Positions 21,352-23,896 of a DNA stretch of 64,000 nucleotides are shown here, piece by piece. The stretch covers positions 1 through 64,000 of the IMG/VR virus record IMGVR_UViG_3300044796_000662; one strand, 5' to 3'. Every line of letters starts with the position of its first letter. The first letter of the stretch is position 1. The translations under genes and the position numbers were made by a program. The notes under the pieces were generated by a model. The model worked only from the letters and a program-made list of their open reading frames with translations, had not been told where the DNA came from and ran no database searches.

Positions 21352-21424
21352 CGCTCCCGGCAGGATTTGAACCCGCGACATCCGACACTAGAGGGCCGGC
21401 GCTCTGCCACTGAGCTACGGGAGC
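21352..21424 (-). tRNA. tRNA with 8-nt anticodon loop CCUCUAGU (CUA/UCUA; suppressor-like)
   Basis: Cloverleaf: acceptor GCTCCCG/CGGGAGC, D GCTC/GAGC, anticodon stem CCGGC/GTCGG, T-arm GCGGG-TTCAAAT-CCTGC. No encoded CCA. Confidence 0.85.
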
Positions 21425-21430
21425 AATGAG

Positions 21431-21503
21431 TGGGGCTTACGGGGTTCGAACCCGTGCTGACCGGAGGTTAGAAGTCCGCGCTCTGCCGCTGAGCTAAAGC
21501 CCC
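21431..21503 (-). tRNA. tRNA-Sup(CUA), amber suppressor-like
   Basis: Acceptor GGGGCTT/AAGCCCC. Anticodon arm CGGAC-TTCTAAC-CTCCG (C31:C39 mismatch) puts CTA at 34-36 with U33/A37. T-arm ACGGG-TTCGAAC-CCCGT. Confidence 0.85.
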
Positions 21504-22253
21504 AAGAGACTTGAGATGCTCGTACCGTCGTACTGTGTTGTCGATGAACTCCTGGTAGGTTTGCGTGCCCTTCTCCTTGTTGCAAGGGAAGCAACAAGGC
21601 AGGCAGTTGTCAAGATCGTAGCCCCTGTTGTTGTCTCTGCGATCGATCCCACCCTTCTTCACCCCCATTTCCCGGAGCTGAAGAACATGGGGGTCGGCAC
21701 TTGGAGCCCGATTGCAATAGTGGCACGGGCTTGTGACCAGAACCCTGAACTGCTCTGGGGTCAGCGGTACAGACCTGTTAGCACGGCGCATTGCAGACCT
21801 GTATGCTGAAAGCTCTGGTACCCATGGGTTAGGGTTTCTTGTAGCTCTGGTTCTGGAGGACGTAAGCTCTCGTGCCAAGCACCCACAAGATTGTGAGCCC
21901 CCTCGTCGCAGGAGGTGCCCCGTGATCACCTTGATCGTGCCGCAATCGCATCGGCATTCCCAGCGATATGTCCTGTTCTTGCTCCTGGCGACCTTTTGCA
22001 AGACCACCAGACGGCCGAATCTTTGACCTGTCAGGTCAGACACCTTGGCCCGCATCCTCTGGCTGGCCAGTTCCTTCGAGAGACAACCACACGACTGCGT
22101 TGCTCCCGAAGTCAGGTGATTGCGGCGTACCATACGCGATACCCCGCAATCACAGCGGCACCACAAACGCACGTGGCGTCCGTACTCAGGAGTATCCCCT
22201 GTTACAGTGAGACGTCCGAATTTCCGACCTACAAGTTCCCGCTGGTCTTGCAC
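21468..22253 (-). CDS. free-standing HNH homing-endonuclease-like protein
   Basis: Two 'G..FGRL.V...W.C.CDCG...L..G..QSCGC' repeats and 'CHYC...GIDR.DN..GY..DNC.PCC..CN..KG'. Codon usage is visibly less GC3-biased than neighbours. Confidence 0.88.
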   Translation of the reverse strand: MQDQRELVGRKFGRLTVTGDTPEYGRHVRLWCRCDCGVSRMVRRNHLTSGATQSCGCLSKELASQRMRAKVSDLTGQRFGRLVVLQKVARSKNRTYRWECRCDCGTIKVITGHLLRRGGSQSCGCLARELTSSRTRATRNPNPWVPELSAYRSAMRRANRSVPLTPEQFRVLVTSPCHYCNRAPSADPHVLQLREMGVKKGGIDRRDNNRGYDLDNCLPCCFPCNKEKGTQTYQEFIDNTVRRYEHLKSLGALAQRQSADF

Positions 22254-22621
22254 GCTCTAGGTGACGTACAAGTGGATTCTTGTCCAGAAGGCGTGCGAGA
22301 GTGACAGAGGGCCAAGGGTAGTCTCTGAACGAGCCTCTTACCCCCAGACCCCACCACGATGGCGGTCATCGAATCACCGAGATCCGGCTCTCGAAATCGG
22401 ACTACGGGAACGTCGGCATCCTCGGCACGATAGTACAGAGCGCGCAGGTGCTTCTCTGTTGGCACGGACAAGAACGCCAAGATGTTCGACTCGGAGTACC
22501 AGGACTTGGTGTCGAGATGGTGTGCCAGGCAGTATTCAACAACGGCATGCATTCCTTGCACTGCCTGCTGACCTGGGGGCAGGTCTGCCCGCACGATCAC
22601 GAATAGCTTACGTGCCTGCAT
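22229..22621 (-). CDS. peptidyl-tRNA hydrolase, Pth2 family
   Basis: 'KLFVIVRADLPPGQQAVQGMHA', 'FREPDLGDSMTAI','LPL'. Confidence 0.82.
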   Translation of the reverse strand: MQARKLFVIVRADLPPGQQAVQGMHAVVEYCLAHHLDTKSWYSESNILAFLSVPTEKHLRALYYRAEDADVPVVRFREPDLGDSMTAIVVGSGGKRLVQRLPLALCHSRTPSGQESTCTSPRACKTSGNL

Positions 22622-22835
22622 CGTCCTTCTCCATCTGCGCATCGTAGGCGTCGTCCAAGGAGAAGACCTCGGTCGTCTCCTTCTTGACACAGCACCCGCA
22701 CCCGTGGCGGCATTCGCGCACGCGCGTGAAGCCCTCCTTGATCCACTCGTCCCCGCTGTAGCGAAGATGCCAGCCCTTCATCGTGAGGTAGCTGACCATG
22801 TGCACTTCACGCATCGACAGACCGCAGCACGTCAT
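22608..22835 (-). CDS. small Cys-rich protein
   Basis: 'MTCCG...CRHGCGCC'. Overlaps its neighbours. Confidence 0.55.
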   Translation of the reverse strand: MTCCGLSMREVHMVSYLTMKGWHLRYSGDEWIKEGFTRVRECRHGCGCCVKKETTEVFSLDDAYDAQMEKDDAGT

Positions 22836-23008
22836 CACTTCTCTCCGTCGTCGTTGGTCAGGGGCTTCGCGCACCTGCACTTGTGTTCGTCGCACGTCTT
22901 CGCGCCTACGAACGGAACGCATGAAACCCAGCGGGCCTGCTTATCGCAGACCCCCTGAGTCTGGATGGCGTTGCCGTCTTCGTCCTCACGCCATGTCTGG
23001 CAGTTCAT
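22835..23008 (-). CDS. small Cys-rich protein
   Basis: 'MNCQ...CDEHKCRC'. ATGA overlap. Confidence 0.55.
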   Translation of the reverse strand: MNCQTWREDEDGNAIQTQGVCDKQARWVSCVPFVGAKTCDEHKCRCAKPLTNDDGEK

Positions 23009-23298
23009 GGGATGTAGACCGTGTCCTCTCCGCGCTCCTCCGCGAGGGTGTTCTCCACGCGAAGAAACGCGCGGGTCTCCTCGATGAGCGCCATGCGCTT
23101 GCAGCCTGCTTCGTGTTCGCCTGCTGTTCGGTCGGCCCCAAAGTTCGAATGCCGGTACTGAAGCGCCTCGCACTCGGGGCAACACGAAGCGTACTCCGCG
23201 TGACAGTGGCAGGCCGTGTTGACCTGCCCCGACCACTCGCCATCGAGGGCGAGCTGGAGCAGGTCGGCCATGATCTGGTTGGTCGAGCGGGGGTCCAT
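23005..23298 (-). CDS. small Cys/His-rich protein
   Basis: 'ACHCHAEYASCCPEC...HEAGC'. Confidence 0.6.
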   Translation of the reverse strand: MDPRSTNQIMADLLQLALDGEWSGQVNTACHCHAEYASCCPECEALQYRHSNFGADRTAGEHEAGCKRMALIEETRAFLRVENTLAEERGEDTVYIP

Positions 23299-23300
23299 GT

Positions 23301-23744
23301 TCAGGCTGTCTTCCCGAACAGGCGAGCAAGGAGCCCAGGCTTGCTGACCGCGACCGCCGGCGCGACCACGGGGACGGGCTCGGACTTGGGGGCCTCCTGA
23401 ACGACCGCTGCGGGCGCTGGTTCCGAAGCCAGCCACGCCTTGACGTTCGCCAGCTCCAGCTTGAAGCCGTGGGCCATCGCCACATTGCAGATGCCGGAAG
23501 CGGAGGGCATGTTGAACTCGCCGCACTTCGGCTCGCACGCGATGTACGGCTTACCGCGCAGCATCGCGTAAGCGAGGAGCAGGAGCCTCGTCTCGTCGCC
23601 GTAGTCGCGCTTCTCGACCCACGCCTGCCAGCGATCCATGCCGGCTGCGTCGCGGATTGCTCCACGCAGGACCGTGCGGCTCACGTGCTCGCGGTCACAA
23701 AGGCTCTTCTTGATCTCGGGGTACTTCACGTTTTTCTTGCTCAT
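23301..23744 (-). CDS. conserved phage hypothetical protein
   Basis: 'TRLLLLAYAMLRGKPY..CE' motif. GGAG RBS. Confidence 0.75.
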   Translation of the reverse strand: MSKKNVKYPEIKKSLCDREHVSRTVLRGAIRDAAGMDRWQAWVEKRDYGDETRLLLLAYAMLRGKPYIACEPKCGEFNMPSASGICNVAMAHGFKLELANVKAWLASEPAPAAVVQEAPKSEPVPVVAPAVAVSKPGLLARLFGKTA

Positions 23745-23860
23745 GACACTCTCCGTTTTCGTTGGGTTGCTCGACCTGGTTGGAGGGAGCATCGCCACGG
23801 AGGGCCACGAGCGCGCTGCGGGTGCAGCTACGTGAAACCGCTGATGTACAGCTAGAGCAT
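23741..23860 (-). other. leader ORF with two in-frame UAG codons and RGPP motif
   Basis: ML*LYISGFT*LHPQRARGPPWRCSLQPGRATQRKRRVS-TGA. The final TGA overlaps ATG 23744. Confidence 0.6.
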
Positions 23861-23867
23861 GGGAGGC

Positions 23868-23896
23868 ATTCTGCGGCCCATGGCCGGGGATGTCAA
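23868..23896 (-). promoter_or_regulatory. sigma70-type promoter TTGACA-N17-CAGAAT
   Basis: Perfect -35, 17-nt spacer, ATG 7 nt after the -10. Confidence 0.8.

Follow-up and report, generated by a model that had tools for sequence, protein, structure and literature searches.

Organization of the locus

The stretch of DNA analysed here (64,000 nucleotides (nt), hereafter the window) carries on its minus strand a unit in which a short leader open reading frame (ORF) containing two in-frame UAG codons precedes a gene termed here gene B, three small cysteine-rich ORFs (C, D, and E), a gene encoding a divergent Pth2-like protein, an HNH endonuclease gene, and two transfer RNAs (tRNAs) with CUA in the anticodon loop (Table 1). 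This unit, which we interpret as a probable translational switch, is the subject of the present study. The window and the first 64 kb of the IMG/VR record IMGVR_UViG_3300044796_000662 (362,937 bp; window GC content 62%) are the same at every coordinate, and the record is itself an excerpt of the Joint Genome Institute (JGI) peat contig Ga0480561_0000005 (569,965 bp; offset, window coordinate + ~122,790). The IMG/VR record (363 kb) was trimmed from the 570-kb contig, and the true genome may exceed the viral record by far. Its gene content resembles that of huge phages (NAMPT, R2K ATP-grasp, 2'-5' RNA ligase/Acb1-like, AAA ATPase, RNase HII, and Dam). No nucleotide relatives of the region were found among GenBank phages, and single-sequence scans of IMG/VR returned the source contig as the sole match; the region is also present as an 11-kb contig at depth 28 in a peat metatranscriptome library. 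The reading of this phage covered 84 kb (the window and the next 20 kb) of ~570 kb, and all evidence for the switch is computational.

An earlier, sequence-only reading of the window had proposed a TTGACA-17-CAGAAT promoter and, behind it, a leader with two in-frame UAGs, an Arg-Gly-Pro-Pro (RGPP) motif, and an ATGA junction with the next gene; all of these lie on the minus strand where that reading had placed them. The promoter is the sole sigma70-like site within 20900-24300 (3.4 kb). The leader ATG at 23860 follows the -10 hexamer by 7 nt, a gap that is constant in relatives and suggests that the leader transcript is probably leaderless, starting at or beside the AUG. The leader codons read ATG CTC TAG ... 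ACG TAG ... CGT GGC CCT CCG ... TCA TGA, the encoded peptide begins ML*LYISGFT*LHPQRARGPPW..., and the terminal UGA (23743-23741) overlaps the ATG of gene B (23744). No Rfam family matched the leader. Taken alone, the frame lies within chance, as a 40-codon frame without TGA or TAA is expected in about 1 of 2 cases at 62% GC, and its significance comes from the comparison with other phages. The leader has 17 residues ahead of RGPP, carries neither an N-terminal signal nor a membrane segment, and is not a secretion monitor.

Both of the tandem CUA tRNAs described in the sequence-only reading are present. In tRNA 1, CUA lies in a 7-nt loop. The loop of tRNA 2 comprises 8 nt, its anticodon could not be named by ARAGORN, and its orthologues carry the 7-nt loop UUCUAGA. 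A convergent plus-strand gene ends on the last base of tRNA 2.

Table 1. Features of the unit, in window coordinates.
Feature	Position	Strand	Characteristics
-35 hexamer TTGACA	23896-23891	minus	5/6 bases invariant across five lineages; sixth is T in L012 (TTGACT)
-10 hexamer CAGAAT	23873-23868	minus	17-nt spacer; C-A-n-n-n-T kept in relatives
Leader ORF	23741..23860	minus	39 codons + UGA: ML*LYISGFT*LHPQRARGPPWRCSLQPGRATQRKRRVS*; frame kept in five lineages, third-position changes synonymous
In-frame UAG 1, leader codon 3	23854-23852	minus	Invariant in five lineages
In-frame UAG 2, leader codon 11	23830-23828	minus	Invariant in five lineages
Arg-Gly-Pro-Pro codons (putative arrest core), leader codons 18-21	23809-23798	minus	
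Predicted sequestering helix, 5' strand GCUCGUGGCCCUCCGU (A-R-G-P-P codons)	23797..23812	minus	All 12 RGPP nucleotides paired
Predicted sequestering helix, 3' strand	23739..23756	minus	Shine-Dalgarno GGAG (23754-23751) and gene B AUG
Gene B	23301..23744	minus	147 amino acids; helical hairpin; conserved LLAYAxLRGxPYxxxE
Cys-rich ORF C	23298-23005	minus	Variable among relatives
Cys-rich ORF D	23008-22835	minus	Variable among relatives
Cys-rich ORF E	22835-22608	minus	Limited to the close family and L032
Divergent Pth2-like gene	22621-22229	minus	130 amino acids; PF01981, 27.9 bits (cut-off 23); phrog_1866
HNH homing-type endonuclease	22253-21468	minus	phrog_374, E 1e-38
tRNA 1	21503-21430	minus	Rfam 54.3 bits; 7-nt loop UUCUAAC; anticodon CUA; discriminator A
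tRNA 2	21424-21351	minus	Rfam 57.5 bits; 8-nt loop CCUCUAGU containing CUA; discriminator G

Conservation of the leader in the close family

Five lineages form the close family of the unit: the window, L003 (comprising loci L003-L005), L006 (L006-L009, on a 536-kb contig), L010, and L012. Loci L003-L010 were found as gene B homologues on huge contigs, and L012 came from a pattern scan of metagenome DNA; two other loci from the same scan, L014 and L015, were discarded as chance matches lying on the antisense strand of unrelated genes. Gene B, the Pth2-like gene, and two CUA tRNAs are kept in all close-family lineages. So are the ATG, both TAGs, and an (A/P)RGPP motif upstream of gene B, which answers favourably the check proposed in the sequence-only reading, namely whether in-frame UAGs and RGPP are conserved upstream of gene B homologues.

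When the segments ATG-TAG1, TAG1-TAG2, TAG2-RGPP, and RGPP-stop were compared between lineages, their lengths differed by +3, +6, +6, -12, -3 (as -2, -2, +1), and +33 nt. Because these insertions and deletions are multiples of three or are compensated, the whole leader frame stays open and ends in TCATGA or, in L012, fuses to gene B. Substitutions in the leader include the synonymous changes GGT/GGA/GGC, GGC/GGT, CCT/CCC, TCG/TCC, and CTC/CTG. Such a pattern is the signature expected of a translated ORF in which UAG would be read as a sense codon.

The tRNAs of the unit have anticodon arms that evolve fast with CUA kept (window 21351-21424; L003:7447-7521 compared with L004:7447-7521). The tRNA bodies of L003 and L004 are nearly identical, and their arms differ (GCGCGGAGUCUAGAUCGCGG, whose loop has 8 nt, versus GCGUAAUUCUAACCUACGG). 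A mismatch at 31-39 is seen repeatedly in both tRNA families.

Covariation of leader stop codons and tRNA anticodons

A tblastn search with the Pth2-like protein led to huge uncultured phages and to cluster C mycobacteriophages. Among the former, LR745208.1 (485 kb, 55% GC) carries the sequence TTGACA-16-TATCAT-7-ATG CAC CAC TAA CTG CCG TAC TGT CGT GGC CCC CCT ... TCA TGA, and this leader (MHH-TAA-LPYC-RGPP) is followed by a gene B homologue, a Pth2-like gene, and a single UUA tRNA. The low-GC phage LR756500.1, considered as a further case, was set aside, as it has the Pth2 gene and a CUA tRNA and lacks gene B and the leader.

A profile of the Pth2-like subfamily retrieved 54 IMG/VR loci, most of them on contigs of 140-675 kb and with GC contents from 25 to 69%. 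According to ARAGORN, tRNAs with CUA, UUA, or UCA anticodons or with enlarged loops adjoin nearly all 54 Pth2-like loci, and overall the Pth2-like gene is adjoined by suppressor or otherwise odd tRNAs in ~50 phage contigs. A gene B homologue occurs in 26 of the 54 loci, each time with a leader directly upstream. In the leaders curated from 24 independent lineages, mostly of huge phages, stop codons and tRNA anticodons pair as TAG with CUA in 16, TAA with UUA in five (L039, L041, L043, L062, and L064), TGA with UCA in two (L034 and L059), and TAG with UUA in one (L056), the last combination being wobble-compatible; incompatible lineages numbered zero. None of 200,000 permutations reached the observed 23 cognate matches in 24 lineages. 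The number of stops also follows the number of tRNAs: leaders with two stops are accompanied by two suppressor tRNAs in 4/4 cases (the close family, L030, L042, and L046), and leaders with one stop by one tRNA in the locus in 19/20 (Fisher's exact test of stop number against tRNA number, ~5e-4 by hand calculation). The co-occurrence of suppressor tRNAs with homologues of the unit, another check named in the sequence-only reading, thus held, with cognate stop and anticodon in 23 lineages and a wobble-compatible pair in the remaining one.

This covariation amounts to in-silico genetic evidence that the odd tRNAs, including those with anticodon loops of 8-10 nt, would really decode. From the same covariation with the leader stops we infer UAG decoding by the two tRNAs of the window.

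The peptide motif is conserved as well. Within the 160 nt ahead of gene B, 29 of 31 loci carry a 12-mer coding for R[GA]PP, compared with 0.02 expected per locus, and the remaining two B-linked loci have RSPP and RDPP. The codons of the motif vary (CGT, CGC, AGA, and AGG for arginine, and all four codons for proline) while the residues are kept, so that selection is on the peptide itself. The TTGACA hexamer also recurs ~30 nt 5' of the leader ATG at distant loci. Among the B-linked loci, the residues just ahead of the leader stop are often aromatic (HFW, PFW, RYW, HLW, YL).

Predicted RNA structure

The leader region was folded with RNAalifold and by single-sequence minimum-energy folding in the five lineages of the close family. 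A 16-bp helix is predicted between GCUCGUGGCCCUCCGU and ACGGAG..GUGUCAUGAGC, that is, between the Ala-Arg-Gly-Pro-Pro codons and the Shine-Dalgarno (SD) sequence and AUG of gene B. A predicted outer helix, with UAG 2 at its base, pairs UUCACGU with ACGUGAA in gene B codons 5-7, and a small hairpin, GCUGC-N4-GCAGC, is predicted directly 3' of UAG 2 in three lineages. In minimum-energy folds the RxPP codons are paired with the gene B SD and AUG in all five family members and in most distant loci, where the partner is AGGAG or GGAG together with the gene B start codon. The z-scores of the family folds were -3.9, -1.8, -2.9, -2.5, and -0.4.

The core proposal of the sequence-only reading, that the unit begins with a stop-codon sensor and ends with the matching decoders, is supported by the conservation of the frame, by the covariation of stop and anticodon, by the tracking of stop number with tRNA number, and by the RGPP codons forming the predicted anti-SD strand. 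Its further suggestions, a switch tied to peptidyl-tRNA stress and a possible role against host defences, gained no support from this comparison.

Proposed mechanism and alternative explanations

We consider it quite probable that the unit is a translational switch testing the activity of its own nonsense-suppressor tRNAs. Our confidence is high for the sensor reading of the leader, moderate for ribosome arrest and for sequestration of the gene B SD, and low for any downstream physiology of the switch.

According to this proposal, transcription from TTGACA-17-CAGAAT would probably start at or beside the leader AUG, and ribosomes would translate Met-Leu and then reach a UAG. Without suppression, release factor 1 (RF1) would terminate translation after 2 codons, or after 10 codons if only the first UAG were read through, and the RNA would stay folded, with the Ala-Arg-Gly-Pro-Pro codons paired to the SD and AUG of gene B and the outer helix closed. 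As the gene B SD and AUG would be paired in this state, we propose that gene B and the overlapping, coupled C, D, E, and Pth2-like genes would go untranslated. Once the CUA tRNAs from the 3' end of the unit were processed, charged, and able to outcompete RF1, ribosomes would pass both UAGs and melt the helices; a pause or arrest on RGPP, located in the anti-SD strand, would free the gene B ribosome-binding site, and ribosomes that finished the leader would terminate at the UGA overlapping the gene B AUG, where reinitiation might occur. Two serial stops would give a steep response, and arrest would amplify rare readthrough. Since the unit has these tRNAs at its own 3' end, its protein output would depend on its RNA output being processed, charged, and competitive with the release factor. 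We infer the transcription start, the suppression, the arrest, the co-transcription of the tRNAs, and the roles of gene B and of the Pth2-like protein alike; our guess is that both proteins either help or curb suppression, for instance through the recycling of peptidyl-tRNA.

Several observations weigh against this interpretation. The leader fuses in frame to gene B, with no ATGA end, in L012, L036, L047, and others. The lineage counts depend on manually curated start codons, and the tRNA counts are confined to 9-kb loci. The covariation in the predicted helix is thin, with one compensatory pair among five sequences, and CCUCC is inherently complementary to GGAGG, so that pairing and Pro-Pro codons are confounded. 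In this phage tRNA 2 has its 8-nt anticodon loop, and similarity to canonical phage tRNAs gave no amino-acid identity for either of the two tRNAs. The metatranscriptome and DNA runs each give the region as a flat contig, from which transcript ends, tRNA processing, and co-transcription are not readable. Finally, neither further in-frame TAGs in coding frames nor ochre recoding were found in the searches described next, which thus point to no wider use of the suppressors.

The presence of suppressor tRNAs raises the question of whether the genome is recoded. If TAG were a sense codon, as in code 15, the leader would be a small gene in that code and the tRNAs general decoders of late genes. CUA tRNAs and "code change modules" are indeed known from recoded phages (Borges et al. 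preprint; PMC13037316), and 84 kb of the ~570 kb of this phage were read. However, TAG is a normal terminator in the window, where it ends about one quarter of the confident genes, and three paralogous tails ...RLMGDDEY stop at TGA, TGA, and TAG. A search for in-frame TAG inside coding frames of the 84 kb found, besides the leader, only gene junctions, and none was found in syntenic orthologues of the window genes; for these scans, those for in-frame stops based on GC content at third codon positions were tightened to exclude antisense shadow frames, and a six-frame blastp of the window against its relatives was noisy, with a conserved R2K junction as its sole clear signal. Likewise, ochre recoding was not found in the complete LR745208.1, in which TAA ends 64 coding-like frames and is followed by only six in-frame continuations, nearly all of them like ordinary gene junctions. 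Recoding of late genes would, moreover, leave the sensor role of the leader intact. We therefore regard a reassigned code as very unlikely, and the module appears to work in standard-code phages; the standard-code jumbo phage XacN1 likewise carries two CUA tRNAs without known targets (PMC5852040).

We find it scarcely credible that the stretch is kept as a non-coding element, an operator or a structured 5' untranslated region, and that conservation of its nucleotides produced the TAGs, the open frame, and RGPP incidentally. Such an element would fit the high nucleotide identity, part of which is frame-independent (L006 changes frame after RGPPW), the location of the TAGs within repeated TAGCTG motifs and predicted helices, and the helix-turn-helix regulators encoded nearby in relatives, but it can explain neither the occurrence of TAA with UUA and of TGA with UCA in leaders that lack nucleotide similarity to this one nor the multiple-of-three indels and the switches between arginine codon families. 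More plausible, although still improbable, is a leader gated by suppression whose RGPP does not arrest ribosomes: a passing ribosome would melt the helix, termination and reinitiation at AUGA would turn gene B on, and RGPP would be kept because CCUCC is an anti-SD sequence. CCU-CCN is complementary to GGAGG and pairs with it in most lineages, ATGA overlaps are common, and the nascent chain is just 12-23 residues long at the motif. An anti-SD role alone, however, would not require arginine and glycine or alanine to be kept while their codons change (CGT, CGC, AGA, AGG; GGN, GCN), and strong arrest by RAPP and RGPP cores has been reported for varied N-terminal sequences (PMC12992588).

A different kind of alternative retains the sensor and places it in a homeostatic loop, in which gene B, the Pth2-like protein, or both would lower suppression, for instance by cleaving the ester that links the aminoacyl or peptidyl group to the suppressor tRNA, and would cap readthrough at a safe level. 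We hold this version to be possible and, on balance, rather unlikely. Because these genomes use the cognate stop as a normal terminator, suppression without limit should do harm; the Pth2-like gene directly adjoins the suppressor tRNA in the ~50 contigs mentioned above, with or without a leader; its subfamily deviates from canonical Pth2 at the GK and DAG motifs; and many B proteins end in ...AA, like degradation tags. On the other hand, the Pth2-like protein could equally recycle peptidyl-tRNA dropped from mini-ORFs of 2-10 codons or from arrested leaders.

Relation to known systems

RAPP and RGPP are robust arrest cores, unrelieved by EF-P and avoided in proteomes (PMC12992588), and arrest peptides of this type comprise ApdA, ApdP, ApcA, and the RAPP/RGPP leaders of Streptomyces lividans (PMC7897499, PMC10951233, PMC12992588). 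As in those systems, in which the stalled ribosome is thought to expose a downstream ribosome-binding site, the element described here has an R-(A/G)-P-P core in a small upstream ORF, and in silico the core is also placed on a structure that hides the SD. Unlike them, its motif would be reached only after suppression of one or two in-frame stops, its leader lacks a signal peptide or membrane segment and is too short for pulling by Sec or YidC, and it resides in phage genomes beside suppressor tRNAs, so that its input would be decoding capacity and not protein export. The element in this sense extends the known control by arrest-peptide leaders to a new input.

Other leaders share parts of the design. 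In SecM-secA, MifM-yidC2, and ErmCL-ermC, a hairpin likewise hides the downstream SD, the leader ORF supplies the 5' strand of this hairpin, and a ribosome held on that strand opens it; the trigger proposed here is nonsense suppression, in contrast to secretion force or an antibiotic. In prfB, encoding release factor 2 (RF2), an early in-frame stop similarly gauges termination against alternative decoding and sets the expression of a translation factor, but prfB uses a +1 frameshift and senses RF2 itself, whereas here a dedicated leader would sense the suppressor tRNA of the same unit. In attenuation of the trp, his, and leu operons, too, downstream genes are controlled by a short leader that is translated according to how much of one particular charged tRNA is available; this attenuation senses the scarcity of sense-codon tRNAs and acts on transcription termination, in contrast to the presence of a stop decoder and the control of translation initiation proposed here. 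In phage lambda, the bar minigenes are two-codon ORFs that cause peptidyl-tRNA drop-off and are toxic when Pth is limiting. By analogy only, the unit links very short ORFs (2-10 codons before a stop) with a putative peptidyl-tRNA hydrolase, with the difference that here the mini-ORF and the Pth2-type gene lie in one operon.

Clusters of phage suppressor tRNAs with translation factors have been described as the "code change module" (suppressor tRNA, aminoacyl-tRNA synthetase, and release factor; Borges et al.) and in XacN1 (PMC5852040), which the present unit resembles in that respect; for those, no leader sensor or Pth2-like partner has been described, and the genomes studied here show no recoding. 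Literature searches returned no description of such a leader nor of a linkage between Pth2 and suppressor tRNAs, in agreement with the sequence-only reading, which knew of no described system of this architecture. If our interpretation is correct, this would be the first natural regulatory element with nonsense suppression by a tRNA of its own operon as input. It would bring together the active fields of ribosome-arrest peptides and of genetic-code manipulation by phages, and would offer a testable handle on why suppressor tRNAs occur in jumbo phages that use the standard code (XacN1 and many uncultured ones); to these tRNAs it assigns two constant partners, gene B and the divergent Pth2-like protein. 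Its compact parts (a promoter, a leader of 100-150 nt, and a tRNA) could also interest builders of suppressor-gated circuits.

Variant loci

At three loci (L067:3971-4172, L068:3339-3537, and L074:3360-3555) the leader ATG frame ends in ...CUA UCG CUA followed by UAG or UAA, and the +1 frame contains R(G/D)PP. Just upstream stands the tRNA of the module, whose 9-10 nt anticodon loop, CCGAUAGAA or ACUAAUAGAC, contains AUAG, the complement of CUAU; the candidate quadruplet stretch is CUAUCGCUAUAG. Reading of CUAU as a quadruplet would shift ribosomes into the RGPP frame, and the leader of these loci may be a sensor of a natural +1 decoder. These +1-frame variants look closer to prfB than the leader of the window does.

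In cultured mycobacteriophages of cluster C, a CUA tRNA, which the Teardrop annotation lists as tRNA-OTHER, stands after the Pth2-like gene. In Teardrop (L084:3430-3480; 91,275-91,325) and Myrna (L083:3430-3480), a -10-like TACCGT or TACAGT lies 6-7 nt before ATG/GTG-TAG-GTG, of which the last GTG is the annotated start; however, an SD-like GAAGG or GGAGG also stands ahead of this GTG. A leaderless start, (A/G)UG-UAG, that shares the frame of the mycobacteriophage gene would be a minimal form of the gate, and such related arrangements, found in mycobacteriophages that grow on M. smegmatis, would permit ordinary bench tests.

Huge phages, and possibly cluster C mycobacteriophages, may share a general device in which a leader peptide tests the function of a non-canonical decoder from its own module. 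Such a leader would bear the signal readable by this tRNA and by no other (UAG, UAA, UGA, or perhaps a CUAU quadruplet), with as many test codons as there are tRNAs. We put this broader reading forward tentatively, judging it slightly more doubtful than probable. If it is true, the device would be a genetic circuit of natural origin in which decoding capacity licenses expression, and the variant loci would be evidence for natural, regulated quadruplet decoding.

In L031, L058, L076, L077, and L082 (~4280-4500), Pth2-like genes with neither gene B nor a leader stand behind tRNAs with 8-9 nt loops (AGUAAUGAC, UGUAAUAA), which ARAGORN labels as Ile(aat), Phe(aaa), or "taat". The Pth2-like gene thus seems to be tied to non-canonical tRNAs generally. 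LR745208.1 has a second odd tRNA far from the module (142332-142406), with an 8-nt loop and the ARAGORN anticodon "ttta". In several lineages (L038:831-1194, L050:2796-3152, and L073:8818-9220), phage transfer-messenger RNA (tmRNA) genes and blocks of four Thr tRNAs with tRNA-Arg(CCU) lie within a few kb, which suggests a translation-rescue island near the module.

Gene B and the downstream genes

Gene B had been described in the sequence-only reading as a conserved phage gene. It is conserved among uncultured huge phages and only there, as no match was found in Pfam, in PHROG, or among GenBank phages; searches for its function with a PDB sequence profile, in the ESM Atlas, and with Foldseek against PDB likewise gave no relative. 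Its AlphaFold2 (AF2) model is all-helical (predicted local distance difference test, pLDDT, 87). Many gene B homologues (L040, L041, L042, L043, L049, L055, L056, L065, and others) end in ...(E/K)(V/K)AA or in ...TAA-like Ala-Ala, resembling ssrA-type degradation tags. The three small cysteine-rich genes follow on the minus strand as the sequence-only reading had described them, with overlapping stops and starts.

In canonical Pth2 enzymes, the active-site motifs include the lysine of G-K and the aspartate of D-A-G-x-T. The gene read earlier as a Pth2 peptidyl-tRNA hydrolase does match PF01981 above the cut-off, and its profile matches the Pth2 structures 2zv3 (E 2.6e-7), 1q7s, and 1wn2 in the PDB; its product, however, belongs to a divergent subfamily, with GQQ aligned in place of the canonical GKGK and EPD in place of DAG. 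The HNH nuclease gene, which the same reading had counted in the operon, is present in the window and missing from all relatives (L003-L012), where the tRNA abuts the Pth2-like gene; it is therefore a lineage-specific insertion and lies outside the switch system. Its ORF starts within the 3' end of the Pth2-like gene (22229-22253), giving that gene a tail of ~20 residues without counterpart in orthologues, and reaches 36 nt into tRNA 1 (21468-21503), its stop UAA consisting of anticodon-loop bases.

Other observations in the window

A C-terminal tail, (T/S)A(H/W)xRLM(G/S/E)(D/T)(D/E)(E/D)(Y/D)-stop, is shared by otherwise unrelated proteins of the window (28387-28413 and 33745-33771 on the plus strand; 43022-43048, 35538-35564, and 6446-6475 on the minus strand) and may be a common docking or targeting tag. 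In IMG/VR, the exact DNA motif of the tail was found only in this contig (three copies, all in the window) and in three unrelated contigs. At 2861-2890 (plus strand) an ORF ends in ...EGDDADIPF, the acidic C-terminal tip with which single-stranded-DNA-binding proteins typically end. The TAG that terminates the R2K ATP-grasp gene is kept in three lineages (window 24932-24934, minus strand; L003:4544-4546; L006), and the gene after it (306-339 amino acids) begins in the same frame within 0-5 codons, so that amber readthrough would fuse both proteins.

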